A stretch of DNA of 64,000 nucleotides, from the IMG/VR virus record IMGVR_UViG_3300023174_000038, positions 1-64,000 of that record; one strand, given 5' to 3'. A program made the translations under genes and the position numbers. Below the pieces are notes generated by a model, which worked only from the letters and a program-made list of their open reading frames with translations, searched no databases and had not been told where the DNA came from. Shown here piece by piece: positions 4,135 to 39,381 of this stretch. Each line of letters begins with the position of its first letter. The stretch's first letter is position 1.

Positions 4135-4177
4135 TCAATACAAGTATTGTATCACGGATACCATTTATTGTCAAATT
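4135..4177 (-). promoter_or_regulatory. Sigma70-type early promoter, copy 1 of an exact 43-bp direct repeat
   Basis: TTGACA-ATAAATGGTATCCGTGA(17)-TACAAT; identical to 4576-4618. Confidence 0.85.
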
Positions 4178-6413: not shown

Positions 6414-7235
6414 TTAAACTAAACTCCAATGTAATATTTGATAGTATTGTAACTCATCATACTTTTTAGGATAATATGTTCCTTCAATACGCAAATGTTC
6501 ATTAGTAAACATCTTATCCCAAATATGTTTTAACGGGTTTTTAGGCTCAACAGAAATCATATGTGCATTTCCGTTACTATTCTTTAGCCAGTATTCATGT
6601 TGTTTTACACGTTTGTTGCTTTTATAAAAACTTGTAATAGGTGTCAACGTAGTAATTTGTTTAAGAGGGGGTGAATCAAAAGTAGGTAATTCTAATTTAA
6701 TATCTCTTTTAAATATATCAAATTTAACATCATAATCATAGAATTCGGGCAATCTAAAAATAATAGGTAACAATTCTTCTGTAACTTTTTTATCATTGCC
6801 GTGAATAAACGTATTTAGGTCTTGTCTATATTTTGATAGTTTAACACCCTTAAGAGACCATAGCATAATTTTCTTACTAAAGTAATCTCTAATTTCAGTA
6901 GCACGAACTCTATCAGATTCTTCTACCCGCCTAAATAAGTTATCATCTAATAGACTAGTAATACCAATATAGTGTGAGCTTTTATCTTTACTATCACGTA
7001 AACGTTTCCAAGCCACACTTAATGCCAGCACATCTTCGGTAGTTTCAATAACTTCATATCGTTTTACGTAGTCACTTCTATTAATATTTTTGAATAGGTT
7101 ATTAAGATAGCTATCATCTAATGAAATAGATGACTGCGGTGATATTGAACCGATACTTATTGGGCTGATAGAATTCATTCCACTAGCTCCACCACCAGTT
7201 ATTGTTATTGTATTACTACTATTTGTATTAGTCAA
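6414..7235 (-). CDS. Hypothetical protein
   Basis: 273-aa ORF coupled to uvsY. Confidence 0.7.
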   Translation of the reverse strand: MTNTNSSNTITITGGGASGMNSISPISIGSISPQSSISLDDSYLNNLFKNINRSDYVKRYEVIETTEDVLALSVAWKRLRDSKDKSSHYIGITSLLDDNLFRRVEESDRVRATEIRDYFSKKIMLWSLKGVKLSKYRQDLNTFIHGNDKKVTEELLPIIFRLPEFYDYDVKFDIFKRDIKLELPTFDSPPLKQITTLTPITSFYKSNKRVKQHEYWLKNSNGNAHMISVEPKNPLKHIWDKMFTNEHLRIEGTYYPKKYDELQYYQILHWSLV

Positions 7236-7689
7236 TTCGTATATCCTCCATGCCTGCTGTACGTAAACGTACTATATGTCCCATCTGCCATTGTTTAGCT
7301 TCAAGACCCTTCATTATACCTAACCAACGATTTCTTAGTAATGCTACTTCATTGATAAGTGTTTCAAAGTCAACTACTTCATCTTCACCATCAACATACT
7401 TTTCAGCGTCACGGCTTGTTAATGCTCTATTATACGCTTCTAAATATTTTTGAAAATGTTTTCGGCGAATTTTCCGTAATTGAATATTAAGATAGTTCAG
7501 TACTGCTTCTATCTCTTGTAGTTGATTAAATCTATGTTCTGTGATTCCGGGTAATGCGGCAATGTTTTTTTCAACATTGCCGTATACCTTTACATCACTC
7601 TTTGCCGAAATTATTTCGTTATCATAATGACTAATAAAATCGGGTATCACAGCTAAATTAGTTGTGATCCGTGTATACCAATTTGACAT
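7228..7689 (-). CDS. uvsY: UvsY-like recombination mediator
   Basis: Size, helical composition, AEKYVDGED motif, position downstream of uvsX. Confidence 0.75.
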   Translation of the reverse strand: MSNWYTRITTNLAVIPDFISHYDNEIISAKSDVKVYGNVEKNIAALPGITEHRFNQLQEIEAVLNYLNIQLRKIRRKHFQKYLEAYNRALTSRDAEKYVDGEDEVVDFETLINEVALLRNRWLGIMKGLEAKQWQMGHIVRLRTAGMEDIRID

Positions 7690-14004: not shown

Positions 14005-15552
14005 TTAGCTTATGACCGCAAAGAAGGGTAAAGGAGCTATATACTCATCATGGTCACGTATCTGTGTCTCTAAATTCACATGATAATCACTTAAATGCTG
14101 TAACATACGTGTTACTAATAAGCTAGCCATAATCAAATCGTCGGTATCACCTATTTTAGCAGCATAACTACCACCATGTGCTACAAATGCTTTTAGTTCA
14201 CTTATAAGACTACGACTATTTACAGTCATTTTCTTGCTCTCAACCAATGTTTTGAACTTAGCACAACTTGCTAGTTTACTTTTATTAGTTGTGTTAAATC
14301 CTCTACGTCCTTTGCCTGCTTCACTAATAAAGATGCCCGGGATATTGCTTTCGCCGTATTCGTTTAATGATATGATAGCGGCTTCCCCTATACCATTACA
14401 TTCTATACTGTAATAGATGTTATTGGGTTCATTTGTACATTCTGCTATGTATTTGCTTATTTGTGCTAAGAGTTTAATCTGACTAGGGATATCTGTTTTA
14501 TTATGTTTCCATTCACCAACTTGGGTAGTAGTGTTTGCTTCAAAAATTTGTATTGCTGACGGATCACCGCCTGTACCAAGACTTGGATCTAATCCTATAC
14601 AATAGATATTACCTTTCTTTGGCTTTTCATACCACCGAACTTGTCCTATACGACTAACAGGTTCTATACCTTCCATAGCTATCAATGTGTTAGGATTAAT
14701 CAATGTCTCATCGGCAATAATAAATTCGCACCCAATTTCTCGGTTGAAACGATCCTCGCCGAGCTGTGCTTTCATTTCGTCAGCCCACTTTTGGTCTCGT
14801 CCTGGTTGCTCACTCCAATGCGCTCTATATGCTCTAAATCCGTTAACACCAATCTCAGTGGTATTGCCAAAATCATCTTCAGTCTTGTTAGCACCTTTCC
14901 AAATATAAGCAAATTGATCCTCATCACTATTTGGTGTGCTTGTGATAATAGCTTTACCACCAGTACTTAGTGTTGGTGTAATAGCTGTCCAGAATTCTTT
15001 AGCGATACTTGGGCGAACGAACGCAAACTCATCCAAGTATAATAGAGTAATAGACATACCACGACCTGTATTTTCAGTTGTTGTAGCTGAAACTATACGA
15101 GATCCATTCTCAAAGTCTAATGACCCTTTATTGTATGTTGTTACACCTGCTTTAATGTAATCAGGACAGTTTTCATATGCATATCGTATCCGTTGCATAA
15201 TCTCCTGTGCACCTGTATATTTGTGTGCCGCAACTAAGATAGTAGAGTCCGGAACAAACATTGCATACCAAAGTAGGTAACCGGCTGCACTTGTTGATTT
15301 ACCTGATTGTCGTGGCATCAAACTAATTGAAAATCTATAGTTATGATAGGTTTCAATTAATCGTGTTTGATAAGCCCAAGGGTGATAGACCATACTACCT
15401 TTAGTAGGATGCTGTATTATAAAAAAGTTATCCATGAAGTATAGATAACCTGTAACAGGATCACAACATTTGATAAAATCCTGTAGTTCTTTATCAGTTT
15501 TGAAAACTGTTTTAGTATAAGGATTTTTTACTAGTGAAGGGGCATTACTCAT
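14005..15552 (-). CDS. terL: Terminase large subunit (T4 gp17-like)
   Basis: PRQSGKST, LYLDEFAF, ITSTPN, nuclease motifs GLDPSLG and DDLIMA. Confidence 0.95.
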   Translation of the reverse strand: MSNAPSLVKNPYTKTVFKTDKELQDFIKCCDPVTGYLYFMDNFFIIQHPTKGSMVYHPWAYQTRLIETYHNYRFSISLMPRQSGKSTSAAGYLLWYAMFVPDSTILVAAHKYTGAQEIMQRIRYAYENCPDYIKAGVTTYNKGSLDFENGSRIVSATTTENTGRGMSITLLYLDEFAFVRPSIAKEFWTAITPTLSTGGKAIITSTPNSDEDQFAYIWKGANKTEDDFGNTTEIGVNGFRAYRAHWSEQPGRDQKWADEMKAQLGEDRFNREIGCEFIIADETLINPNTLIAMEGIEPVSRIGQVRWYEKPKKGNIYCIGLDPSLGTGGDPSAIQIFEANTTTQVGEWKHNKTDIPSQIKLLAQISKYIAECTNEPNNIYYSIECNGIGEAAIISLNEYGESNIPGIFISEAGKGRRGFNTTNKSKLASCAKFKTLVESKKMTVNSRSLISELKAFVAHGGSYAAKIGDTDDLIMASLLVTRMLQHLSDYHVNLETQIRDHDEYIAPLPFFAVIS

Positions 15553-15588
15553 AACAAGTATTTATATGAGCAACTTAGGAATAGTATT

Positions 15589-24419: not shown

Positions 24420-24525
24420 GCTTTGATAAGGTATCTAATGCTCCGGTGAGTAGTCTAATAAAAATATAAAAGATTACTCCTAGTACTAATACTATAAATC
24501 CATAGCCAAGTATATCTAATATCAT
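24409..24525 (-). CDS. 38-aa single-TM membrane peptide (MILDILGYGFIVLVLGVIFYIFIRLLTGALDTLSKHDD)
   Basis: Hand translation; ATGA overlap with the vWA gene stop; fills the gap between neighbours. Confidence 0.6.
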   Translation of the reverse strand: MILDILGYGFIVLVLGVIFYIFIRLLTGALDTLSKHDD

Positions 24526-25808
24526 GCTGTTACTGGCTCATCATAGATTGCATATGTACCGAATGGGGGATTGGGATTCTTATCACCATGAATGACCCAT
24601 GTCGTATCACAATAATCTGCATCACCCCAACTACCAAAAGGATAGCCATCAGTAAAACAAATCAATCGTTTAGGTACATTGCCGATATCTTTCAAGTACT
24701 TAAAGATACAATCAAAGTCAGTACCGCCACCGCCCATTGGCTCATATTCATCAATGAGGTCCATGTTCTCACTACTGAAGTCTTTGGGGTTGTATGTCTC
24801 AGTATCAAAACAGAATACATGGACCTTATAACCATCAAAACTATTCATCATGCCACCGATTTCACCTAAGAATGCCTGTGCTTGACTATTGCTAATACTA
24901 CCTGACATATCAATTGCAATAACAACATCAATTTCTTCACCGGGATTCATGCCGGGCATGATAGCATCCATGTGCCAACCTCTACGTGAGGGACGCATCC
25001 AACTATAATCTGTACGAATAGCACTTGTCAAATTAGTTTGAATCAGTTCACGCCAAGGCATAACTGGGTTAGTATGCTGTTTAATCAAACGCTCAACACC
25101 TAAGGGTAATGAACCTGCTTCAGCACTACTTGCGGCATTGATAATAGCTTGCTTAACTTCCTGACGTACACGTTCACGTTCTTCAGGACTCATTGAAGGA
25201 CGCTTACCTTTTTTATTACCTTCACCTTCTTGATCACCGTCACTATCACCGTCACCATCCATGTGATCGTCAATCATCTGGTCAACTAAATCATCAATAG
25301 AGATTTTCTGAACATTCTTCATTAAATCATCATAGATTTCTTCTGCGGCTTTACCATCATACTTTTGCTCATATAAGCAAGGTACTGTCTTAATAAACTC
25401 ACCTACTTTGTGACGTTTCAAATCAGCATTAACAGCATAGTCATCAGCAATGTTCCAGATCTCAGGATCACGATTACCTCTACGACCCATGTGGTCATAT
25501 ACAACGTGTAACACTTCATGTCCAACTAAGAATTCAACTTCTTTGGGCTTCAACATCATAATGAAACGACTATTGTAGTAGAATTTCAAGCCATCAGTTG
25601 CCGCTGTACTACACCATTCATCAGCATTAATCAATTGCATACGTGTAGCAAGATTGCCAAAAAAACTATGACGTAACAATAGACCAATACGTGCGGTAAC
25701 TAATTTCTCACGTGCTTGATAGTCAATCTTACTATCTGTAGGTCCTACAAGATTCTCAAATTTCTTACTACGACTACGTTTCTTACTGGGATTAATTACT
25801 TCACTCAT
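24522..25808 (-). CDS. Metallopeptidase-like plus vWA domain protein (DUF2201-type)
   Basis: TAATDG, HEVLH, WN.A.D, MIDAS motif DMSGS, GGGGTDF, FTDG. Confidence 0.85.
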   Translation of the reverse strand: MSEVINPSKKRSRSKKFENLVGPTDSKIDYQAREKLVTARIGLLLRHSFFGNLATRMQLINADEWCSTAATDGLKFYYNSRFIMMLKPKEVEFLVGHEVLHVVYDHMGRRGNRDPEIWNIADDYAVNADLKRHKVGEFIKTVPCLYEQKYDGKAAEEIYDDLMKNVQKISIDDLVDQMIDDHMDGDGDSDGDQEGEGNKKGKRPSMSPEERERVRQEVKQAIINAASSAEAGSLPLGVERLIKQHTNPVMPWRELIQTNLTSAIRTDYSWMRPSRRGWHMDAIMPGMNPGEEIDVVIAIDMSGSISNSQAQAFLGEIGGMMNSFDGYKVHVFCFDTETYNPKDFSSENMDLIDEYEPMGGGGTDFDCIFKYLKDIGNVPKRLICFTDGYPFGSWGDADYCDTTWVIHGDKNPNPPFGTYAIYDEPVTA

Positions 25809-29668: not shown

Positions 29669-30270
29669 TTTTTGTTAAACAATAAACTAGATGCAATAAC
29701 CATAGCAGTTTGTGCGGCTTCTACATCTGTGGGTTGTTCTTTCCAACCTACACTAATCTGCCCAATGAAGACTCCGGGCTCTGCTGGTACACTGATACGA
29801 CACATATAGTTTACTCCGTATTCTTTATATACAAATCCAATAAGACTTTGTGGCTTTGTATATGGGCTACAGGGAATCTTACCTGACATCAATCCAATAA
29901 CATCGTTATTATTGTCATAGTTTTTACTAAACAACCCAACTTCTAATCCGTCATTTCTTTTATCTCTACCACCATTGCGTGTAGCTAAGTAAACAACTTT
30001 TCGTGTGTTAAGCAATGTATTGACTTCAAGAAAGGCAACCATTTCTACTTCAGTATTTTTTAATAAGAAATTATATGCGTCATCATACTTACCGTTCATC
30101 TTTGGTAATGCCTGTTGAGCACGGTAACTTGCTAAGAAGGCATCTTTTTCTGTATAAACTATCCAACCACCAAATCCTAGTACACAGAGAAACACAACGG
30201 TGAATAGGCGAAATGGACTTTCGCCTATATAGGTTAATAAACTAAAGAGAAAATCTTTAAGTTTGTCCAC
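29665..30270 (-). CDS. Single-TM membrane protein with a C-terminal GAF-like domain; resembles the T4 holin T architecture
   Basis: N-terminal amphipathic segment, TM at about aa 20-39, two Cys, C-terminal strand-strand-helix pattern; CDS is solid, function is inference. Confidence 0.55.
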   Translation of the reverse strand: MDKLKDFLFSLLTYIGESPFRLFTVVFLCVLGFGGWIVYTEKDAFLASYRAQQALPKMNGKYDDAYNFLLKNTEVEMVAFLEVNTLLNTRKVVYLATRNGGRDKRNDGLEVGLFSKNYDNNNDVIGLMSGKIPCSPYTKPQSLIGFVYKEYGVNYMCRISVPAEPGVFIGQISVGWKEQPTDVEAAQTAMVIASSLLFNKK

Positions 30271-31534
30271 CAGTAGCTACCTCTTTGTCGCAGACAAATG
30301 CTGTTACTGCAACATTGCCGTGTACGTGACTTGCTGTACGAATCATATCCATTAATGGATCAACGGCAATTAACAATACTAACACAGCTTCACTTGGTAG
30401 TTTTAATAAGTCACACACAACTGCTACTGTAGCAACTGTAAGAATACCTGTTGTACCTGCACTTGCTAATCCTGCCAAAATACTACCAAATAACACAACT
30501 GCTAGTCCCGTTAAGCCTAATGGAGCATCATAGATATTAGCAATGAATACTGTAGCAATAGCATAGTAAACAATACTACCAATACGATTGACTGTAAAAC
30601 TTAGTGGAACTGTTAGTTCAACACCACCTTTATCAAAGTGTAGTCTGTGTAATGATTCTTGTGCGTATGGAATACAAGCTAAACTACTACGTGAACTAAT
30701 AGCAACAATCAATGTTTCTTTAGTTTCACGGATAACAGTCATTAGACTTAATCCACTACGATACCAGATCATAGCAGTACCTGCGGCTACAACTAATAGT
30801 CCACCAACAAACTGTTGGAATACAAAGTCAAACATTGTTAAGAATATACCTACCCCTACCTTACCAACTTGGGCAGCAATCATTGCTAATAGAGCGATTG
30901 GTAAAAAGTAATTTAAGAATTTAAAGATACTGATACTTGCTTGTTGAATGCTTTTAAGTACTTCAACTAGCATCTTTTGACCTTCTGTTTTAAGATGTCC
31001 AAGAGCAACACCAAATATTAAACAGAAGATAACAATCTTCAAACTTTCACCATTGTTTAACGTGTTGAAAATGTTTTCTGGAATAAACTTCTCTGCCATC
31101 TTACCTGCACTTACTGCCGGTGCTACTGGCATTGGTTCTTTAAGAGTAATGTTTAAATCAGTACCACTGTCTTTGTTATTAACCAATACACCAAGTTGTG
31201 TTTTCTTTTCAGGAGTCATTTCAGTTCCTGTGACTAAAACTGTACCTACGCCAATTATTGCGGCTAAGAACATGCTACCAACAAAGCCTACAATGATTTT
31301 GCGTATTAATTGTTGGCTGCCTTCTTTTTGTAGTAAGCCAATGATACCAACTAGTATAGTTGCTAACAAGAATGGTAGTACAACAACTTTAAGTAAACTT
31401 ATATAGATACTACCAATACTATCAAAGTTAATGCTGAACTCGGGTGCGTAAACACCACTCAATATACCCACGATAATAGAACCAAGTATGGTCCACGGGC
31501 TTGTTAAAAACGTTTTTAAATGTGCGGTTGTCAT
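30257..31534 (-). CDS. Dicarboxylate/amino acid:cation symporter (DAACS, GltP-like)
   Basis: Multi-TM; LLK.VVLP, FIPENIF, SSRSS motif, DMIRTA in TM8. Confidence 0.9.
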   Translation of the reverse strand: MTTAHLKTFLTSPWTILGSIIVGILSGVYAPEFSINFDSIGSIYISLLKVVVLPFLLATILVGIIGLLQKEGSQQLIRKIIVGFVGSMFLAAIIGVGTVLVTGTEMTPEKKTQLGVLVNNKDSGTDLNITLKEPMPVAPAVSAGKMAEKFIPENIFNTLNNGESLKIVIFCLIFGVALGHLKTEGQKMLVEVLKSIQQASISIFKFLNYFLPIALLAMIAAQVGKVGVGIFLTMFDFVFQQFVGGLLVVAAGTAMIWYRSGLSLMTVIRETKETLIVAISSRSSLACIPYAQESLHRLHFDKGGVELTVPLSFTVNRIGSIVYYAIATVFIANIYDAPLGLTGLAVVLFGSILAGLASAGTTGILTVATVAVVCDLLKLPSEAVLVLLIAVDPLMDMIRTASHVHGNVAVTAFVCDKEVATGGQT

Positions 31535-31543
31535 ACTGAGTCC

Positions 31544-32361
31544 TTATTTCTTTTCAGCTTTGTAGCGATCCATTAACTTTTTAGTGTCAATATTACTGTA
31601 TTCATTTTTAATAACGTAATTAATAATGCTTAACAGTTGTAGTGATTTAGGATTTACTGCTACAGCAATATTATCTACGCTATCACTTATTGTAATTGTC
31701 TTAGTACTAATTGCGGCGTCTGGTTTCTCAAAAGCAATTTTCTTAATTTCAAACTCATCACGGTACGCAGCCGCAATATCACCCCTTGTAACTTTATCAA
31801 TGATTACATCCCATTTATCTTCTGGTAGAAATACAGCATTAGGGAAATTGATACGGGCAAATGTGTCATAGCTTGAGTTACGAATAAAACTTATTTTACC
31901 GTTAAAATCTCTAATTACTTGATATGTTTCTTTGCCTTGACTATTTTGACTTAGCCATAAACGATTAACAACTAAACTTTGTCTTAGCTTAATATAAGGA
32001 TCACTGAACCTAACAACCTGTAATCTAGGGCCGGTTACTGACAATTTGCTAACAGCAATATCGGCACGTCCGTCTCGTACTTGTTCAACAACTTCAGCAA
32101 AACTTTCTGCATCTCGTCTAAATTGTACTGGAACTCCGAGTAATACTCCAATTCTTCGTGCAATTTCAACGTCAAGACCATGGATATCATCCTCACCGCC
32201 ACTGAAGAAGGGAGGGTTATCTTTTTTGGTCATAGCCACAATAAGAACGTTTGCTTTCTTAATTGCGGCTATATCAGGGGGTAGTGGTACCGTAGAAGTT
32301 GGTAATTGTGCGTGGACAACTGAACTAATCAGTACAAATAATAATAGTAGTAGTTTTTTCA
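31544..32361 (-). CDS. Periplasmic amino-acid binding protein (family 3 SBP)
   Basis: Signal peptide MKKLLLL, NPPFF, GLDVEIA, GRADIAVS.LSVT..R, RFSDPY; start near 32361 (track start 32380). Confidence 0.85.
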
Positions 32362-32404
32362 TAGTGTTGTATTTATGCAAGGTTATATGTCAATTGTTTT
32401 ACTA

Positions 32405-32430
32405 ATAAAAAAGAGCCCCACAGAGCCCTT
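32405..32430 (-). terminator. Intrinsic terminator
   Basis: GC-rich hairpin AAGGGCTCTGTGGGGCTCTT followed by a T tract. Confidence 0.65.
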
Positions 32431-32512
32431 AGTACTGGTTACGCAAATCCAGCGACACGCTATTTTGTGTCCGATTTAAATATAGCTAAAAACCAGCGTT
32501 TAACGCCAGTAA

Positions 32513-33160
32513 TTACTTTCCCAATAAGCTGTCAACCTTAGCCTCAGCAACATCTAAACGTGCTTCAATAGCGTCCAATATTGGATCTGCTGGAGTAGAA
32601 ACTGCTTCAACAATTTGTTGTGTTACTTCAGGAGAAACTTCTTCAACACCTGTAGCTGTAGCAATTACTTCAGCAACTGCGGCTGCTACTTCTTGTGCTA
32701 CTTCTGGGGCCGGAGTTGGCATATCAGCAACTGCTTGCATAATAGCTTCTGTAATTGCTACTGGATCAACTACAACTTCTGGCTCTGCTGTTACAACTGC
32801 CATAACTGCGGCTGCAACGATTTCAGCAACTTCCTCATGAGCAACGGCTGCTGCTTCAGTTTGTGCTATAACAACGTCAGCAACAATGTCAGCGGCTTCT
32901 GCATGGTCAGCACTTGGTGATAGTGCAACTACTTCTTCAACTTCTATCGGTGCATCTGCGGCTGGGGCAGAAATAATAGCATCAATATGTTCTTGAGTTT
33001 GAACAGCAATCAAGTGGTCAACTTGTACTTCAACTACGGATAATCTTGCGTCTAGTTCTTCAATGCTTATGGCACTGTCTGTGTTAACTGTTGTTCCAGT
33101 TAGGTTGGCTAATTTGGCTTCTACAGCTACTAATCTTGCGGCTAAATCTTCAAATCTCAT
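32513..33160 (-). CDS. Acidic Ala/Val/Glu-rich protein with three ARLxxxE coiled-coil motifs; likely -1 frameshift extension to 32460
   Basis: SD AAGGAG; ends G GGA AAG TAA followed by a hairpin. Confidence 0.75.
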   Translation of the reverse strand: MRFEDLAARLVAVEAKLANLTGTTVNTDSAISIEELDARLSVVEVQVDHLIAVQTQEHIDAIISAPAADAPIEVEEVVALSPSADHAEAADIVADVVIAQTEAAAVAHEEVAEIVAAAVMAVVTAEPEVVVDPVAITEAIMQAVADMPTPAPEVAQEVAAAVAEVIATATGVEEVSPEVTQQIVEAVSTPADPILDAIEARLDVAEAKVDSLLGK

Positions 33161-33206
33161 GAGTTTCTCCTTGTGGGGTTAATTGTGTGCCACCATGGCA
33201 CATAAT

Positions 33207-33241
33207 TATTTAACAAGTATTGTGTGACAATGATGTGACAA
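33207..33241 (-). promoter_or_regulatory. Pho-box-like direct repeat plus TAAATA
   Basis: TTGTCAC-ATCA-TTGTCAC, 11 nt, TAAATA. Confidence 0.7.
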
Positions 33242-33242
33242 A

Positions 33243-33953
33243 TCACGACCAATATTTAGATCCGTCTAAATTGTCCCAATATTTTTTATTGTTCCGATTA
33301 ACAAAATTCTTAACCAAATATTTACCCATACCAAGATATCCCATCTTTTTAAATCTACGACTATCCTGTCCAAAGTGATGCTTAATGATTCTAAATTTTT
33401 TTGGACTGTACTTTTTAGACAAGAAATAATCCTCAGATGTTACAAACTGTTCAGGGAATCCTCCATATTCAATAAACTTATCTCTACGGGTTAGCATAAA
33501 TGCCCCAACAGCAAATGGACTAAAGAATTTCAATGTATGATTTATTGTATTAAAAAGCGTAAATCCAATCATAGCTCTTGGGTCTTTATCATAAGATTTG
33601 ATGTTTAACCCAACAAGATCCAATTGTTTAGATTCCATAATATCTACTGCATCTTTTATTACATTATTCTTAAAGAAACGAACATCAGCATCAATGAATA
33701 AAATGTACGGCGTTGTGGCTAATTTAGCACCGTTATTTTTAGCAATAGAAACAGGGCCGCCACCAATAATTTCAACATTCAATGAATAACTATTATCTTT
33801 AATGACCTTTCTAGTATTATCAGTGGAACAGTCAGCAATGATAACTCTAGTATCACCAATATCTTGACTACGCAACGAATCTAACAAATGATGAATATAA
33901 TTTTCTTCATTCTTGCAAGGTACAACAATAGTAATTTTATCACTGAGTTTCAT
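33243..33953 (-). CDS. Family 2 glycosyltransferase
   Basis: TIVVPCKNEE, IIADCSTDNT, KNNGA, LFIDAD, GGF, SED; start MKLSDK at 33953. Confidence 0.9.
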   Translation of the reverse strand: MKLSDKITIVVPCKNEENYIHHLLDSLRSQDIGDTRVIIADCSTDNTRKVIKDNSYSLNVEIIGGGPVSIAKNNGAKLATTPYILFIDADVRFFKNNVIKDAVDIMESKQLDLVGLNIKSYDKDPRAMIGFTLFNTINHTLKFFSPFAVGAFMLTRRDKFIEYGGFPEQFVTSEDYFLSKKYSPKKFRIIKHHFGQDSRRFKKMGYLGMGKYLVKNFVNRNNKKYWDNLDGSKYWS

Positions 33954-34120
33954 TTTTTTATACACTTTCCTTCAATTTTAAATTGATTAAACTTTAACCA
34001 ATATGTCATACTTTGTAAACTTTGTTCACATGAGGATCGGTCCTGAAATGTCAGTTCTACCCGTCCCGGTATGTCCTTTGGGTCGTTCATATGAACTGCT
34101 AATATTAGTAATACCCACAT
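33950..34120 (-). CDS. 56-aa protein with hydrophobic N-terminus (MWVLLILAVHMNDPKDIPGRVELTFQDRSSCEQ...GKCIKK)
   Basis: Hand translation; SD GGAGAAGGA; ATGA overlap with the GT2 start; overlaps the tail of the upstream phosphoesterase gene. Confidence 0.55.
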   Translation of the reverse strand: MWVLLILAVHMNDPKDIPGRVELTFQDRSSCEQSLQSMTYWLKFNQFKIEGKCIKK

Positions 34121-34868
34121 TGTCCTTCTCCTTAGTCCAAGTAACTATTTCCCAACGTCCATCATGATGTTCTACTAATGCTGTACAACTTTCAACCCAG
34201 TCGCCATCATTCATATAGATAACACCATCTATAGTTTTTATTTCAGCATGGTGTATATGACCACATATCACACCATCAAAGCCACGCTTTTTACAATAGC
34301 CAGCAAGATTCTTTTCAAACTGAAACATAAAATCTATAGCTTTTTTTACTTTGTGTTTAAGGTATTTGCTAATACTAAAGTACCCAAAACCAAAACGATG
34401 ACGTATCCAATTGAACTTACTATTGAGCGATAAAATGAAATCATATGCTTTGTCTCCTAAAAATGCTAACCAAGGTGCTAGTCGTGTTATGCCATCAAAC
34501 AAATCACCATGTGTAACTAAATAATGCTTACCATCTATACCTATATGTTCTATTTGATTATGAATTTCTATAAGACCAAAACTAAAATCATATGGAATCA
34601 TAGGTCTTAAAAACTCATCGTGATTGCCAGCAATATAAACAACTCTAGTACCACGTTTAGCATGGCCTAACACTCTACGTACTACATTGGTATGGCTTTG
34701 TTTCCAGCGCCATTTGTTTTGCTGTATACGCCATGCATCAATAATATCACCTACTAGATAAAGTGTATCACATGTATTGTGCTTTAAAAAGTTATTTAAC
34801 CTATCAGCCTGACTATCTTTGGTACCTAAATGTACATCACTCACAAAAATAGAACGATATGTTTTCAT
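34026..34868 (-). CDS. Metallophosphoesterase of the PlcP/LpxH-like family
   Basis: SDVHLG, LVGDIID.W, GNHDE, HGDLFD, CGHIHH, YMNDGDWVESCTAL; start MKTYRS at 34868. Confidence 0.85.
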   Translation of the reverse strand: MKTYRSIFVSDVHLGTKDSQADRLNNFLKHNTCDTLYLVGDIIDAWRIQQNKWRWKQSHTNVVRRVLGHAKRGTRVVYIAGNHDEFLRPMIPYDFSFGLIEIHNQIEHIGIDGKHYLVTHGDLFDGITRLAPWLAFLGDKAYDFILSLNSKFNWIRHRFGFGYFSISKYLKHKVKKAIDFMFQFEKNLAGYCKKRGFDGVICGHIHHAEIKTIDGVIYMNDGDWVESCTALVEHHDGRWEIVTWTKEKDNVGITNISSSYERPKGHTGTGRTDISGPILM

Positions 34869-34872
34869 ATAG

Positions 34873-34907
34873 TATTTATTGAGAGATATGTGACAAATTA
34901 GTGACAA
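34873..34907 (-). promoter_or_regulatory. Pho-box-like direct repeat plus TAAATA
   Basis: TTGTCAC-TAAT-TTGTCAC, 11 nt, TAAATA, 4 nt, ATG. Confidence 0.72.
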
Positions 34908-34909
34908 TC

Positions 34910-35530
34910 TTATTTGTTAGCTAAAGGATTGTCCATAGCTTTTTGTATTTTGCTATCAACTTCTCTCTTTAGCGTCTCTACTTCACGGTTGATTTCTCTA
35001 CGTGCCGCAGTAAATTCACTGTTAATTTCTTTACGGGTTGATTCCATATCTTTGCGAATTTGATTAGCTTCGTTCCTTGCTCTCTCCAAGTCTTCTCGCA
35101 CAGCTTTACGCATATCACGCATTTCTGATTCTGTTTCACGTTGTGCATTCTTAACACTACGTTCTACTTGTTCAGTTACAGTTTCATTACGGCGAATATC
35201 GTTCTTTAAATCGGTTTTGATATCACGTGTGTAATCAGCACCCTTTTGACTATTTTCTTCAATAACTGCTAAACGCTTATCAAATCCAGATAAGTCTGGC
35301 GCAGAGTATTCAGCTATCTTTTTCTTCATACCCACATAGTCTTTATAGACTTCAAATGTTCCATAAAGTCCACCTAATATAGATGATACGATAGTAAACG
35401 CTACCATTAGTTTAGCTGGAGTAAACTCATACCCACCAATACTAATTACAGTATCTTTACTTGCGTATTTCTTAGCGGCGGCTTCAAGTTCATCAACTTT
35501 AGCATTTACGTTTTTAATTTCTTCACTCAT
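34910..35530 (-). CDS. Membrane-anchored coiled-coil protein
   Basis: One TM (LMVAFTIVSSILGGLYG), long R/E/K heptad region, ends DNPLANK. Confidence 0.75.
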   Translation of the reverse strand: MSEEIKNVNAKVDELEAAAKKYASKDTVISIGGYEFTPAKLMVAFTIVSSILGGLYGTFEVYKDYVGMKKKIAEYSAPDLSGFDKRLAVIEENSQKGADYTRDIKTDLKNDIRRNETVTEQVERSVKNAQRETESEMRDMRKAVREDLERARNEANQIRKDMESTRKEINSEFTAARREINREVETLKREVDSKIQKAMDNPLANK

Positions 35531-35541
35531 TTTATTTTCCT

Positions 35542-37209
35542 TTATTTATATTGTAGATTCACCAAATCTTGGTGTAGTTTATCGCTAGACAATTGACGCA
35601 AAACTCTTGCGTTGTCTACATTTACTTGATTTTTGTAAATCTCTTTTGGTGCATAGAACGGTGCATCTGCTAATGCAAATGAATATGCTTGATAGCCTGC
35701 AGGTTGTGTTGCCATTCTTGCTATATCAACACCGCCGGCTAATTCATTTGGCTGAACATTTCTATTCACTGTTTCTGTCTTTTGTTCTTGTGTATTTGTA
35801 TTTTGTACAATTGGTCTTTCTTCAATTGCATCATTCAATACTGAACGTGAACCCATTTTAATACCTTCATTCTGAGGTACTTCTATTTCAGGAGTAGTAG
35901 CATTACGACCCTGCGGTGATTGTAAACTATACATTTCAGTTGATCCAAATGAAACATTATTACTCATTGTATTATTAGGATCAGAAAATATAGTTTGAGT
36001 TGGTGAACGTAGTCCTCCAAGATTGATTACACTAGTCTGTGTAGTATTTACAATAGCAACAATAGATGATTGTGAGGATGTATTTATTTGTGTAGTTGAT
36101 GATCCAGTAGTTGTCATACTGCTAGTAACACTTTGTGCAGTTAGTGAACCAGCAACTGATTCTGCTTGTTCTCGTGCTTGCTGTGCATCTTTTGCGGCGG
36201 CTGACTCTGCTGCCTGAACAACTGCCTTAGCTTCATTGCCTATTCTAGTTTGGTTACTACTAATCATACTTAATACATTACCTAGACTAGGACCGGCTTT
36301 ACTATCATCTTTAGCAGATTTATTTTCACTAGGACGAGGCTGAGATCCTGCAGGAGGAGGATTTCCTGGCGGGGGAAGGGGCCCTGCTTGTTGAGAACCA
36401 TTAGGTGGGGGAGGACTACCTGGGGGAGGAGGTGGAGGTGCGCCATCTTCTGGTGGAGGTGGGGGAGGTGCATCCGCTACTGCTACTGGAGTAGGTGCTA
36501 ATTTAGCAAGAGCATCTGAGTAACCTCTACAACTAGGTGAGTATAATGGGTTAGTAGCACAAGGGTCAACACTATACTTCAAACTAAAATTTACATTAAT
36601 AATTTCAGGACCATATGGTCCAACCCAGTAGTTGTTGTCTCTTCCCACAAATCCATACTGAGCATTACCTAAATCAGGAGTAGCATATGCTGACTTAAAT
36701 GTTTCTGACCAATAGAACTGAGTCCAACCATATCTACGATTTACATCATAGTTGTATGCTTCTACTACCTTTGTGTTTGTGTTGTTGTATATGTTTACAT
36801 AAGCCTTTAGATAATCTTGTCTGCCATCATCCCATCCATTACCGTTCTTAGCAGTAAAGCCAAAGTTAAAACCATTCACTTGTAATCCTGTGCCACTATT
36901 AGGTAGCGCATTTTTAATAGCAACAGTTTGATTTAAGTCTGTTAGTCCATATGAAAAATTAATGACATTAGACCCTGCGCCCCAGGCGGCAACTCTGGGC
37001 AATGGACCACAATAACCAGGGCCGCCCGGCTCCCAACATGTAAGCTGTTGACCAATAGTACCGGCATTTTGCCATGTACTTGTAGTAGCTGTGGCATTAC
37101 TGGTAAAATTGACCAAATTACCAGTTGTTGTTACATCCTGACTATTAGAATATCTTATTGACAATAAGACCAAGAACAGCCCCAATGCCAATTTTCTTAT
37201 AAGTGTCAT
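35542..37209 (-). CDS. Secreted/surface protein with a beta-rich N-domain, Pro-rich linker and low-complexity stalk
   Basis: Signal peptide; DPCATNPLYSPSC; PPPPPP runs. Confidence 0.75.
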   Translation of the reverse strand: MTLIRKLALGLFLVLLSIRYSNSQDVTTTGNLVNFTSNATATTSTWQNAGTIGQQLTCWEPGGPGYCGPLPRVAAWGAGSNVINFSYGLTDLNQTVAIKNALPNSGTGLQVNGFNFGFTAKNGNGWDDGRQDYLKAYVNIYNNTNTKVVEAYNYDVNRRYGWTQFYWSETFKSAYATPDLGNAQYGFVGRDNNYWVGPYGPEIINVNFSLKYSVDPCATNPLYSPSCRGYSDALAKLAPTPVAVADAPPPPPPEDGAPPPPPPGSPPPPNGSQQAGPLPPPGNPPPAGSQPRPSENKSAKDDSKAGPSLGNVLSMISSNQTRIGNEAKAVVQAAESAAAKDAQQAREQAESVAGSLTAQSVTSSMTTTGSSTTQINTSSQSSIVAIVNTTQTSVINLGGLRSPTQTIFSDPNNTMSNNVSFGSTEMYSLQSPQGRNATTPEIEVPQNEGIKMGSRSVLNDAIEERPIVQNTNTQEQKTETVNRNVQPNELAGGVDIARMATQPAGYQAYSFALADAPFYAPKEIYKNQVNVDNARVLRQLSSDKLHQDLVNLQYK

Positions 37210-38681: not shown

Positions 38682-39314
38682 CTATTTAGTCAACCTACCC
38701 CTAGATAGATTGAATAAAGTAATTTTATCATCATCTGGTTTTAAATAAAAGTTAATTTGGGAATTATTATACCAATGTTTACCGTATGCATTACTATTCT
38801 TATTCTTTCTGTTGTCTCTCCATTCCGATGTAGGTATCCATCCGGATGGAATTTCATTTTTGTAGTACATTTTACGATTAACTAATTCAACTGACGATTT
38901 TTCTACACACCAAACTTTTCCAAAATTAGAGTTATTTTCTTTTTGTTGGTGCTTTCTTTCTTTAAAAGTTTTATTTCTCTTTTCCATTGCAGATTGGGTT
39001 TTTGACAACTTACTTGCTCGGGCTTGTTGTTCTTGATTTATCGCAAAATTAGTTTTAGTTTGAACATTTTTAAATGGATTAGGATGTAATTGTCTGCATT
39101 TTTTACCAGCTTCACTTTGTCTAATTTTTACTAATTCTTCTTTAGGACTTAATTTTGCTAAACCCTGCCATGCAACATAATCTTGCCAACGACCATATTC
39201 TTCGTATAACTTGCGATGTGCCTCTGCATGTTCATCAATAGATAATTCTATAAGGTTCCTAGGATCATCTGTCCCGCCTGCGTGTTTAGGAATAATATGG
39301 TGTTTATGGCTCAT
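38682..39314 (-). mobile_element. Free-standing HNH homing endonuclease
   Basis: HHIIPKHAGGTDDPRNLIEL...EHAEAH; two NS(N)xxGKxW repeats; own ATAAATA 5 nt before ATG 39314. Confidence 0.85.
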
Positions 39315-39332
39315 GCAAGTATTTATGCCTGC

Positions 39333-39381
39333 CGCACCCCCGTCCAAGACACTTTTCTCTTTGCTTCATACAGCAATAACT
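39333..39381 (-). pseudogene. Truncated relic of a second tmRNA acceptor piece
   Basis: TAAATA (39394-39389), then GCTGTATGAAGCAAAGAGAAAAGTGTCTTGGACGGGGGTGCG breaking off in the presumed T-loop at the HNH promoter. Confidence 0.55.

Follow-up and report, generated by a model that had tools for sequence, protein, structure and literature searches.

Pho-box-like repeats at a fixed distance from a phage promoter motif, upstream of predicted phosphate-stress genes in a freshwater giant phage

In the genome of a freshwater giant phage, two copies of a direct repeat resembling the binding site of the phosphate-starvation regulator PhoB are each followed, after the same 11-nt spacer, by TAAATA, a hexamer that recalls the late promoters of phage T4. 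Is this arrangement a genuine regulatory module and, if so, which regulator and which sigma factor are likely to read it? To address this question, we analyzed a 64,000-nt stretch of DNA (positions 1 to 64,000 of IMG/VR record IMGVR_UViG_3300023174_000038, hereafter the window) and compared it with related viral contigs and with bacterial promoters. The locus comprises the following features, all on the minus strand, which is the coding strand:

34890-34907, minus strand: Pho-box-like direct repeat of site 1, TTGTCAC-TAAT-TTGTCAC (11-bp period)
34873-34879, minus strand: promoter core of site 1, A-TAAATA, 11 nt after the box and 4 nt before the ATG
34026-34868, minus strand: PlcP-like/LpxH-like metallophosphoesterase, 280 aa
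33950-34120, minus strand: small 56-aa ORF with a hydrophobic N-terminus, overlapping the 3' end of the phosphoesterase gene
33243-33953, minus strand: family-2 glycosyltransferase, 236 aa from the ATG at 33953
33224-33241, minus strand: Pho-box-like direct repeat of site 2, TTGTCAC-ATCA-TTGTCAC, starting 2 nt after the glycosyltransferase stop codon
33207-33212, minus strand: promoter core of site 2, TAAATA (preceded by GT), 11 nt after the box
33186-33202, minus strand: leader hairpin TGTGCCA-tgg-TGGCACA, 4 nt after TAAATA at the predicted 5' end of the transcript, followed by the AAGGAG ribosome-binding site at 33167-33172
32513-33160, minus strand: acidic Ala/Val/Glu-rich 215-aa protein of a virus-only family, function unknown
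32429-32478, minus strand: conserved two-hairpin element at the 3' end of the module, followed by a terminator-like hairpin at 32411-32430

We first verified that the two sites are exact. In site 1, TTGTCAC is found at 34907-34901 and 34896-34890, the spacer at 34889-34879 and TAAATA at 34878-34873; in site 2, TTGTCAC is found at 33241-33235 and 33230-33224, the spacer at 33223-33213 and TAAATA at 33212-33207. There is no other exact copy in the window, and the only looser match (26679, plus strand, two mismatches) lies inside a gene. From base composition, 5e-4 exact matches are expected for the double heptamer and 5e-7 when TAAATA is added, while TGTCA-N6-TGTCA is seen twice against 0.22 in dinucleotide shuffles. 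TTGACA-N12-TAAATA at 32393-32370, before the solute-binding-protein gene, at first looked like a third site (3 such sites against 0.09 expected); however, the only relative with that gene has a plain TATAAATA and no half-site, and we treat it as an ordinary TAAATA promoter.

We next examined whether TAAATA behaves as a promoter motif in this phage. The coding strand carries 53 copies against 30 on the other strand, and 15 of these 53 lie within 45 nt upstream of an ATG where 2.3 are expected (p=5e-9), an enrichment that control AT-rich hexamers do not show. The motif directly precedes the terminase large subunit gene (TATAAATA at 15566) and is also found before large probable structural genes. 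It is distinct from the sigma70-type promoters of the phage, which form a separate class, TTGACA-N17-TAYAAT, with 14 members on the coding strand and none on the other. Compared with the 8-bp T4 late box TATAAATA (positions -13 to -6; PMC2988020), site 1 reads AATAAATA (7 of 8; the A(-13) variant is common in T4) and site 2 only GTTAAATA (6 of 8); across relatives, only TAAATA is invariant. Note that, on T4 numbering, the transcript from site 1 would start at or next to the ATG (leaderless or nearly so).

To determine whether the geometry is conserved, we searched for TGTMAY-N5-TGTMAY boxes, without reference to TAAATA, in 80 loci chosen only by PlcP homology. We found 56 distinct boxes, 55 of them on the gene strand. 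TAAATA follows in 54 of the 56: at exactly +11 in 46 and at +21/22, i.e. about one helical turn further, in 8, while the spacer sequence is not conserved. Of 58 distinct PlcP upstream regions, 25 carry the strict box and 2 a loose one, 6 lie behind a box-driven pstS, and 10 have the box about one helical turn further upstream. We then scanned the whole viral collection for TGTCAY-N5-TGTCAY-N11-TAAATA, which gave 47 distinct sites: 22 precede PstS, 12 the PlcP-like gene and 4 the acidic family, whereas the remaining 9 (other genes or none) are about the number expected at random. The identity of PstS is secure (NF008171, 400 bits against a cutoff of 339). The module is thus real and conserved, and the sequence-only reading, which had proposed a Pho-box/late-promoter hybrid that non-conserved spacing in relatives would refute and had expected pstS/phoH-type target genes, is supported in every part that sequence can test.

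The 280-aa protein matches PF00149 (3.6e-11); LpxH equivalog models hit it only below cutoff (45.5 and 33.6 bits against 134 and 190) and the nearest solved structures are LpxH at 2e-5, as expected for a fold related to, but distinct from, LpxH. It has more than 8000 metagenomic homologues, the top 120 of which are all uncultured, phage-like sequences. The glycosyltransferase (PF00535, 1.2e-21) is its partner gene, as in bacterial plcP-glycosyltransferase operons, which are Pho-box controlled (PMC4796936), and the synteny holds in most relatives. The 56-aa ORF is found by tblastn at 50-86% identity in most related loci, although part of that conservation is forced by the overlap. The 215-aa protein, whose ATG (33160) lies 46 nt after site 2, gave no Pfam, PHROG or NCBIfam hit and no convincing atlas match; its atlas clusters are 100% viral, and it follows a box in 9 distinct leaders. 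The box of site 2 is identical to that before pstS in several contigs. The leader hairpin is kept in 9 distinct leaders, with one pair showing G-C to A-U changes, but this support is modest. The two-hairpin element at the 3' end of the modules covaries: 32 distinct copies lie after pstS, the acidic gene or the glycosyltransferase gene, 94.4% of cells are paired, 6 of 10 pairs have double changes, and 0 of 500 shuffles reach the score. No Rfam family matches 32000-35700.

We also compared the phage promoters with those of bacterial pstS genes. The nearest bacterial PstS proteins (70-78% identity) are from Comamonadaceae/Burkholderiales, and their genes carry the same box, but in a different context: the promoters read TGTCAC-N5-TGTCAY-N10 followed by TAGAGT (16), TAAAGT (12), TACAGT (3) or TACATT (2), and none of 42 has TAAATA. 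With the sigma70 hexamer at -12 to -7 and the T4 late core at -11 to -6, spacers of 10 and 11 nt both put the end of the box at -23. The host -10 element is replaced by the phage motif, and the end of the box falls at the same distance from the predicted start.

The explanation that we favor, with moderate confidence and in the absence of binding or expression data, is that the two sites are activator-dependent promoters of a phage phosphate-stress cassette. A head-to-tail dimer of a PhoB-type response regulator, most likely the host's phosphorylated PhoB made when the infected cell is phosphate-starved, would bind the two TGTCAC half-sites, which sit where a -35 element would be (about -39 to -23 on T4 numbering), and help RNA polymerase start at TAAATA. 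This element would be the second promoter class of the phage, probably read by a gp55-like late sigma as in the T4 superfamily. The phosphoesterase/glycosyltransferase pair and the acidic protein (and PstS in relatives) would therefore be made in the phage-directed phase, and strongly only under phosphate limitation; the pair probably swaps membrane phospholipid for glycolipid and so frees phosphate. In line with a weaker core that needs an activator, Pho-type promoters less often carry the extra upstream A than ordinary TAAATA sites (13 of 45 against 11 of 16; Fisher p=0.0075). The nearest cultured relatives by terminase, Atu_ph07, the PA5oct group and Sinorhizobium Phosso, encode gp55-type late sigma homologues, and in Atu_ph07 TAAATA precedes baseplate and virion genes (the PA5oct literature describes only sigma70-like promoters and does not inform on the TAAATA class).

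Some observations leave this model open or fit it less well. PHROG scans found no late sigma among about 39 window ORFs, and Atu_ph07 gp694 used as a query found only itself; PhoB binding, phosphate dependence, the involvement of a gp55-like sigma and the late timing are inferred. PhoB normally acts through sigma70 region 4, which gp55 lacks, gp33 occupying the beta-flap instead; the proposed pairing therefore has no precedent. Moreover, in 10 of 10 contigs with two promoters, all four half-sites share C or A at position 4 (p=0.007), which a single conserved host PhoB does not easily explain. The host is not identified, and the phage is 35% G+C whereas Comamonadaceae are probably much more G+C-rich. 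No terminator separates site 1 from the upstream late-type promoter at 35548, and read-through can also express the phosphoesterase gene. Public sequencing runs did not help: those holding the phage are lake DNA metagenomes, and the three RNA runs contain only assembled contigs of relatives 85-90% identical, which give no start sites or strandedness. A bolder version of the model, in which PhoB directly activates RNA polymerase carrying a gp55-type sigma devoid of region 4, would be an activator-sigma pairing not described before and would form an AND gate between the late programme and host phosphate starvation, packaged in shuffling cassettes with a defined 5' end and a structured 3' end and with a half-site specificity (TGTCAY or TGTAAY) that tracks the host or the regulator. 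This version remains tentative. Sequence data cannot separate PhoB gating of the late holoenzyme from dual use of one element by sigma70-PhoB and the late sigma, the two alternatives raised by the sequence-only reading.

Among the other explanations, the one that survives best, though we consider it unlikely, is that of an ordinary PhoB-sigma70 promoter, TAAATA being simply the -10 element that host sigma70 uses once recruited by PhoB. The resemblance to the gene-proximal motif would then reflect AT-rich drift, or would mean that all TAAATA promoters of this phage are read by host sigma70. Indeed, the sequence, period and position of the box match host pstS promoters almost exactly, TAAATA keeps T-12, A-11 and A-9 of the hexamer, the mechanism of PhoB probably needs sigma70 region 4, and no late sigma was found among the window ORFs scanned. 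However, all 34 bacterial -10 hexamers that begin with TA at +10 end in T, whereas the phage element ends in A, is invariant and sits 1 nt further away, and the sigma70-class promoters of the phage use TAYAAT. Selection for exactly TAAATA across variable spacers is hard to explain for a sigma70 -10.

Somewhat less likely still, the repeats could be bound by a phage-encoded regulator, either a PhoB/OmpR-like protein or an unrelated protein that binds tandem sites, the cassette then being a phage-autonomous regulon whose specificity co-evolves with the phage. The concerted switch of half-sites within contigs (all TGTCAY or all TGTAAY) speaks in favor of this possibility, as do the nesting of TGTAAY types inside TGTCAY phage lineages on the PstS tree and the report of phage-borne phoB and phoR genes in soil viromes (PMC10987575). 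On the other hand, the ancestral box type is identical to the host-lineage pstS box, the regulon content is the classic host Pho regulon, and no DNA-binding regulator was seen among the window ORFs scanned. A back-translated PhoB recognition motif (VDVHIRRLR) hit only six viral contigs, none of which carries the cassette, but this test is weak because a divergent protein would be missed.

It is very unlikely that the sites are plain sigma70 promoters with TTGTCA as a near-consensus -35 hexamer and a -10 located 16-17 nt downstream (TACTAT at 34874-34869 and AATTAT at 33207-33202). Although a consensus scan reports both at 9 of 12 matches, it found 14 such sites where 13.4 are expected by chance; at site 1, transcription would start downstream of the ATG; the proposed -10 positions are not conserved in relatives, whereas the second heptamer and TAAATA are; and TGTAAY variants are poor -35 hexamers. 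Finally, although phage pstS clearly derives from bacterial pstS, a non-functional remnant of a captured host promoter or a chance repeat is effectively refuted by the conservation of the box before three unrelated gene families with invariant spacing, while spacers and flanks vary.

Infection is thus probably wired to the phosphate status of the host. If the module works as proposed, a large and abundant group of freshwater giant phages (about 600 related viral contigs) reads the host's phosphate sensor and makes a phosphate-binding protein and a lipid-remodelling pair only when phosphate is scarce, which bears on nutrient cycling in phosphorus-limited lakes. Whereas phage auxiliary genes are usually inferred from gene content alone, here the promoter architecture indicates when they are used. 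The module also offers a natural test of whether a classical activator dependent on sigma70 region 4 can work with a T4-type split sigma.

How does this module compare with known systems? As in PhoB-dependent promoters of Proteobacteria, such as the Comamonadaceae pstS promoters recovered here, two TGTCAY-type half-sites in direct repeat with an 11-bp period replace the -35 element, end about 10 nt upstream of the -10 and lie upstream of pstS and plcP-type genes; the downstream element, however, is an invariant TAAATA 11 nt away instead of a variable TAnAnT 10 nt away, the promoters are on a lytic-type giant phage genome, and many phage lineages use TGTAAY half-sites. As in bacterial plcP-glycosyltransferase operons (PMC4796936), a metallophosphoesterase gene under a Pho box is immediately followed by a glycosyltransferase gene, but the cassette is phage-encoded, and the glycosyltransferase is of family 2 in the window while a family-4 one follows in at least one related contig. 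T4-type late promoters, read by gp55 with gp33 and the gp45 clamp, share an AT-rich core at -10 that contains TAAATA, is enriched before structural and packaging genes and needs no -35 hexamer; they have no conserved upstream element, however, and their activator is the sliding clamp rather than a site-specific protein, whereas here an activator box sits at -39 to -23 and the core is often only the 6-mer. In T4 middle promoters, where AsiA remodels region 4, an upstream activator site also replaces the -35 element about 12 nt from the -10, but the MotA box at -30 appears to be a single 9-bp element bound by a phage protein and the -10 to be of the sigma70 type TAnnnT; here we find a tandem repeat of host Pho-box type, a non-sigma70 core, and only two sites in 64 kb, both before phosphate-stress genes. 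Lastly, control of phage pstS, phoA and other genes by host PhoBR is already known in cyanophages (Zeng and Chisholm 2012, as cited in PMC10976474), where PhoB control of phage genes has been shown by gel shift (Rihtman et al. [quoted passage not shown] The cyanobacterial boxes, however, are of the PyTTAAPyPy(T/A) type, are loosely placed and were found unreliable to predict, whereas the box described here is of the proteobacterial type and has a strict geometry relative to a phage-type core promoter, in a regulon that includes a probable lipid-remodelling pair and an unknown acidic protein and in modules that have a conserved structured 3' end.

The window belongs to a 348.7-kb viral contig from lake water (IMGVR_UViG_3300023174_000038), is 35% G+C and carries all its genes on the - strand. 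On that strand, TTGTCAC-N4-TTGTCAC-N11-TAAATA occurs exactly twice, as noted in the sequence-only reading, whereas base composition predicts 5e-4 matches for the double heptamer and 5e-7 when TAAATA is added; TGTCA-N6-TGTCA is seen twice against 0.22 in shuffled sequences. The two sites and the elements associated with them are as follows:

34907-34873, - strand: site 1, 4 nt before the ATG (34868) of a 280-aa LpxH-like metallophosphoesterase gene
33950-34120, - strand: 56-aa ORF with a hydrophobic N-terminus, overlapping the last 90 nt of the phosphoesterase gene in another frame
33241-33207, - strand: site 2, starting 2 nt after the stop codon of the family-2 glycosyltransferase gene that follows the small ORF
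32429-32478, - strand: two-hairpin element
30257-32380, - strand: genes for a family-3 periplasmic solute-binding protein (PF00497, 1.5e-17) and a 425-aa sodium:dicarboxylate/amino-acid symporter (PF00375, 4e-66)

LpxH models hit the phosphoesterase only below their cutoffs. The small overlapping ORF is present in most relatives but absent from a sub-lineage whose phosphoesterase matches only residues 1-250. Site 2 is followed by a 46-nt leader with a hairpin and an AAGGAG ribosome-binding site, and then by the gene for a 215-aa acidic protein, which belongs to a virus-only family with no assignable function. The solute-binding protein and the symporter, encoded just downstream of the cassette, are unusual transporter-type auxiliary genes and are shared at 89-93% identity with one related contig (L012).

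To determine whether TAAATA is a promoter motif of this phage, we examined its distribution over the window. TAAATA occurs 53 times on the coding strand and 30 times on the other, and ATAAATA 22 times against 2. Fifteen of the 53 copies lie within 45 nt upstream of an ATG, where 2.3 are expected (p=5e-9), while TATAAT, TAAAAT, TATATA and TAATAA show no such enrichment. The motif precedes the terminase large subunit gene as a full TATAAATA, as well as a virion-structural-like gene and several very large genes. As far as sequence can show, TAAATA is therefore a promoter motif of this phage. A separate promoter class is just as clear: there are 14 near-consensus TTGACA-N17-TAYAAT sites on the coding strand and none on the other, and many share the extended form TTTGACAATAAAT. 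These near-identical, strong sigma70-type promoters (TTTGACAATAAAT-N10-TAYAAT; - strand positions 4174, 4615, 4880, 25863, 27194, 27295, 27650, 27941 and others) are clustered before small ORFs and are probably the early class. The phage thus has a sigma70-type class and a TAAATA class, and the two Pho-type sites use the latter.

The terminase is closest (48-50% identity) to those of the giant phages Atu_ph07, the PA5oct group and Sinorhizobium Phosso, a clade that encodes homologues of the T4 gp55 late sigma. In a 28-kb stretch of Atu_ph07, TAAATA precedes baseplate and virion genes. Describing the TAAATA class as late and gp55-type is therefore a reasonable inference, but this is not shown for this phage, and no such sigma was found among the window ORFs scanned. 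The window also carries a UvsY-like recombination mediator, which is a T4-superfamily trait, and two homing/HNH endonuclease-like genes (7228-7689, 38682-39347 and 24522-25808).

We next asked whether the repeat is a Pho box. The phosphoesterase gene was used to select 80 related viral loci (the best of about 600), which we searched for TGTMAY-N5-TGTMAY alone. This search returned 56 distinct boxes, 55 of them on the gene strand; TAAATA follows at exactly +11 in 46 and at +21/22, about one helical turn further, in 8, while the spacer itself is not conserved. Of 58 distinct regions upstream of the phosphoesterase gene, 25 have the strict module and 2 a loose one, 6 lie behind a pstS gene that has the module, 10 have the box about a turn further upstream, and the remaining 15 sit inside operons with no promoter. 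A scan of the whole viral collection for TGTCAY-N5-TGTCAY-N11-TAAATA, the pattern that the sequence-only reading proposed to scan for in this genome and in relatives, gave 47 distinct sites: 22 before PstS (identified above the curated cutoff; NF008171, 400 bits against 339), 12 before the phosphoesterase, 4 before the acidic protein and 9 elsewhere, nine being roughly the random expectation. Some pstS promoters carry a third in-phase half-site. In two contigs (L045:5896 and L225, - strand, about 5722), a box-N11-TAAATA promoter is followed by a fourth small protein family of unknown function (81-113 aa, motif KMKLEM..V......ELD). Taken together, the comparative evidence that the repeat is a Pho box is strong.

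The nearest bacterial PstS proteins (70-78% identity) are from Comamonadaceae and other Burkholderiales (Limnohabitans, Acidovorax, Hydrogenophaga and Polaromonas). Their pstS promoters read TGTCAC-N5-TGTCAY, then 10 nt, then TAGAGT (16), TAAAGT (12), TACAGT (3) or TACATT (2), and none of the 42 boxes has TAAATA within 30 nt. The phage box is thus the host-lineage Pho box in the host position, but the -10 has been replaced by the phage's own invariant motif, placed 1 nt further away. Since the sigma70 hexamer is numbered -12 to -7 and the T4 late box -13 to -6, the 10-nt and 11-nt spacers both put the end of the box at -23, which suggests that the extra base keeps the activator at the same distance from the start site. 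Pho-type promoters also carry the extra upstream A less often than ordinary TAAATA sites (13 of 45 against 11 of 16; p=0.0075), as would fit a weaker core that depends on an activator.

The units [box-TAAATA]-pstS, [box-TAAATA]-phosphoesterase-small ORF-glycosyltransferase and [box-TAAATA]-acidic protein occur in different orders in different contigs. In a related 24-kb contig (that of the homologue P0081), curli-type CsgF/CsgG genes lie upstream of the phosphoesterase gene, and a family-4 glycosyltransferase follows it in place of the family-2 enzyme. Each unit tends to end in a two-hairpin element of about 40 nt (GACAC-loop-GTGTC, then CTGGA-loop CGTAA-CCAG), which lies directly after pstS, the acidic 215-aa gene or the glycosyltransferase gene and is often followed by an intrinsic terminator. 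Besides the window copy, 31 other distinct copies were found, e.g. in the related loci L004 (1249-1297), L044 (2614-2661) and L009 (5618-5667). Covariation supports the element well: 94.4% of cells are paired, against 84% in shuffles and 24-51% when the partners are slid, 6 of 10 pairs show double changes, and 0 of 500 shuffles reach the score. It has no Rfam match and could be a 3'-UTR stabiliser or attenuator, or the recombination end of a mobile cassette.

At the other end of the units, the phosphoesterase transcript would, on T4 numbering, be leaderless or nearly so. The same holds for terminase and two other genes whose ATG lies 4-6 nt after TAAATA (gene starts at 15552, 13983, 34868 and 39314, - strand, the third being that of the phosphoesterase); these genes have no Shine-Dalgarno sequence, which implies leaderless or near-leaderless mRNAs from this promoter class. 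The phosphoesterase gene in relatives shows the same pattern, with gaps of 3-7 nt. The leaders of the acidic gene and, by eye, those of pstS begin with a small hairpin, for which covariation support is modest.

Two features do not fit neatly. First, phage lineages use either TGTCAY or TGTAAY half-sites (e.g. loci L010, L022, L034 and L040 against L001 and L002), and all four half-sites of a contig agree in 10 of 10 contigs with two promoters (p=0.007). On a PstS tree, which includes only the nearest bacterial sequences and whose root is unknown, the 15 phage sequences form one group (99/94) apart from the 80 bacterial ones, with the TGTAAY types nested among TGTCAY types. Such a concerted switch suggests a change in the regulator's specificity, through either a different host PhoB or a phage-encoded regulator; no phage PhoB-like gene was found, albeit by a weak test. 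Second, PhoB is known to act through sigma70 region 4, which gp55 lacks, and in T4 gp33 sits on the beta-flap instead. If the late holoenzyme is the one used, the activation contact must therefore be new; otherwise sigma70 uses TAAATA with PhoB's help.

The occurrence and geometry of the two sites are confirmed, and the proposal of the sequence-only reading, that host PhoB gates a phage late promoter or that one element serves both sigma70-PhoB and the phage late sigma, is supported as far as sequence comparison can go, the mechanism itself being still a hypothesis. In our literature searches we found no report of a proteobacterial-type Pho box fused at fixed geometry to a T4-late-type core, of a phage-borne phosphoesterase-glycosyltransferase pair under such control, or of the 3' element. 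What is established is host PhoBR control of cyanophage pstS and other genes, including by gel shifts, but there the boxes are cyanobacterial, loosely placed and poorly predictable (PMC10976474). In bacteria, plcP is Pho-box controlled and is often paired with a glycosyltransferase (PMC4796936).
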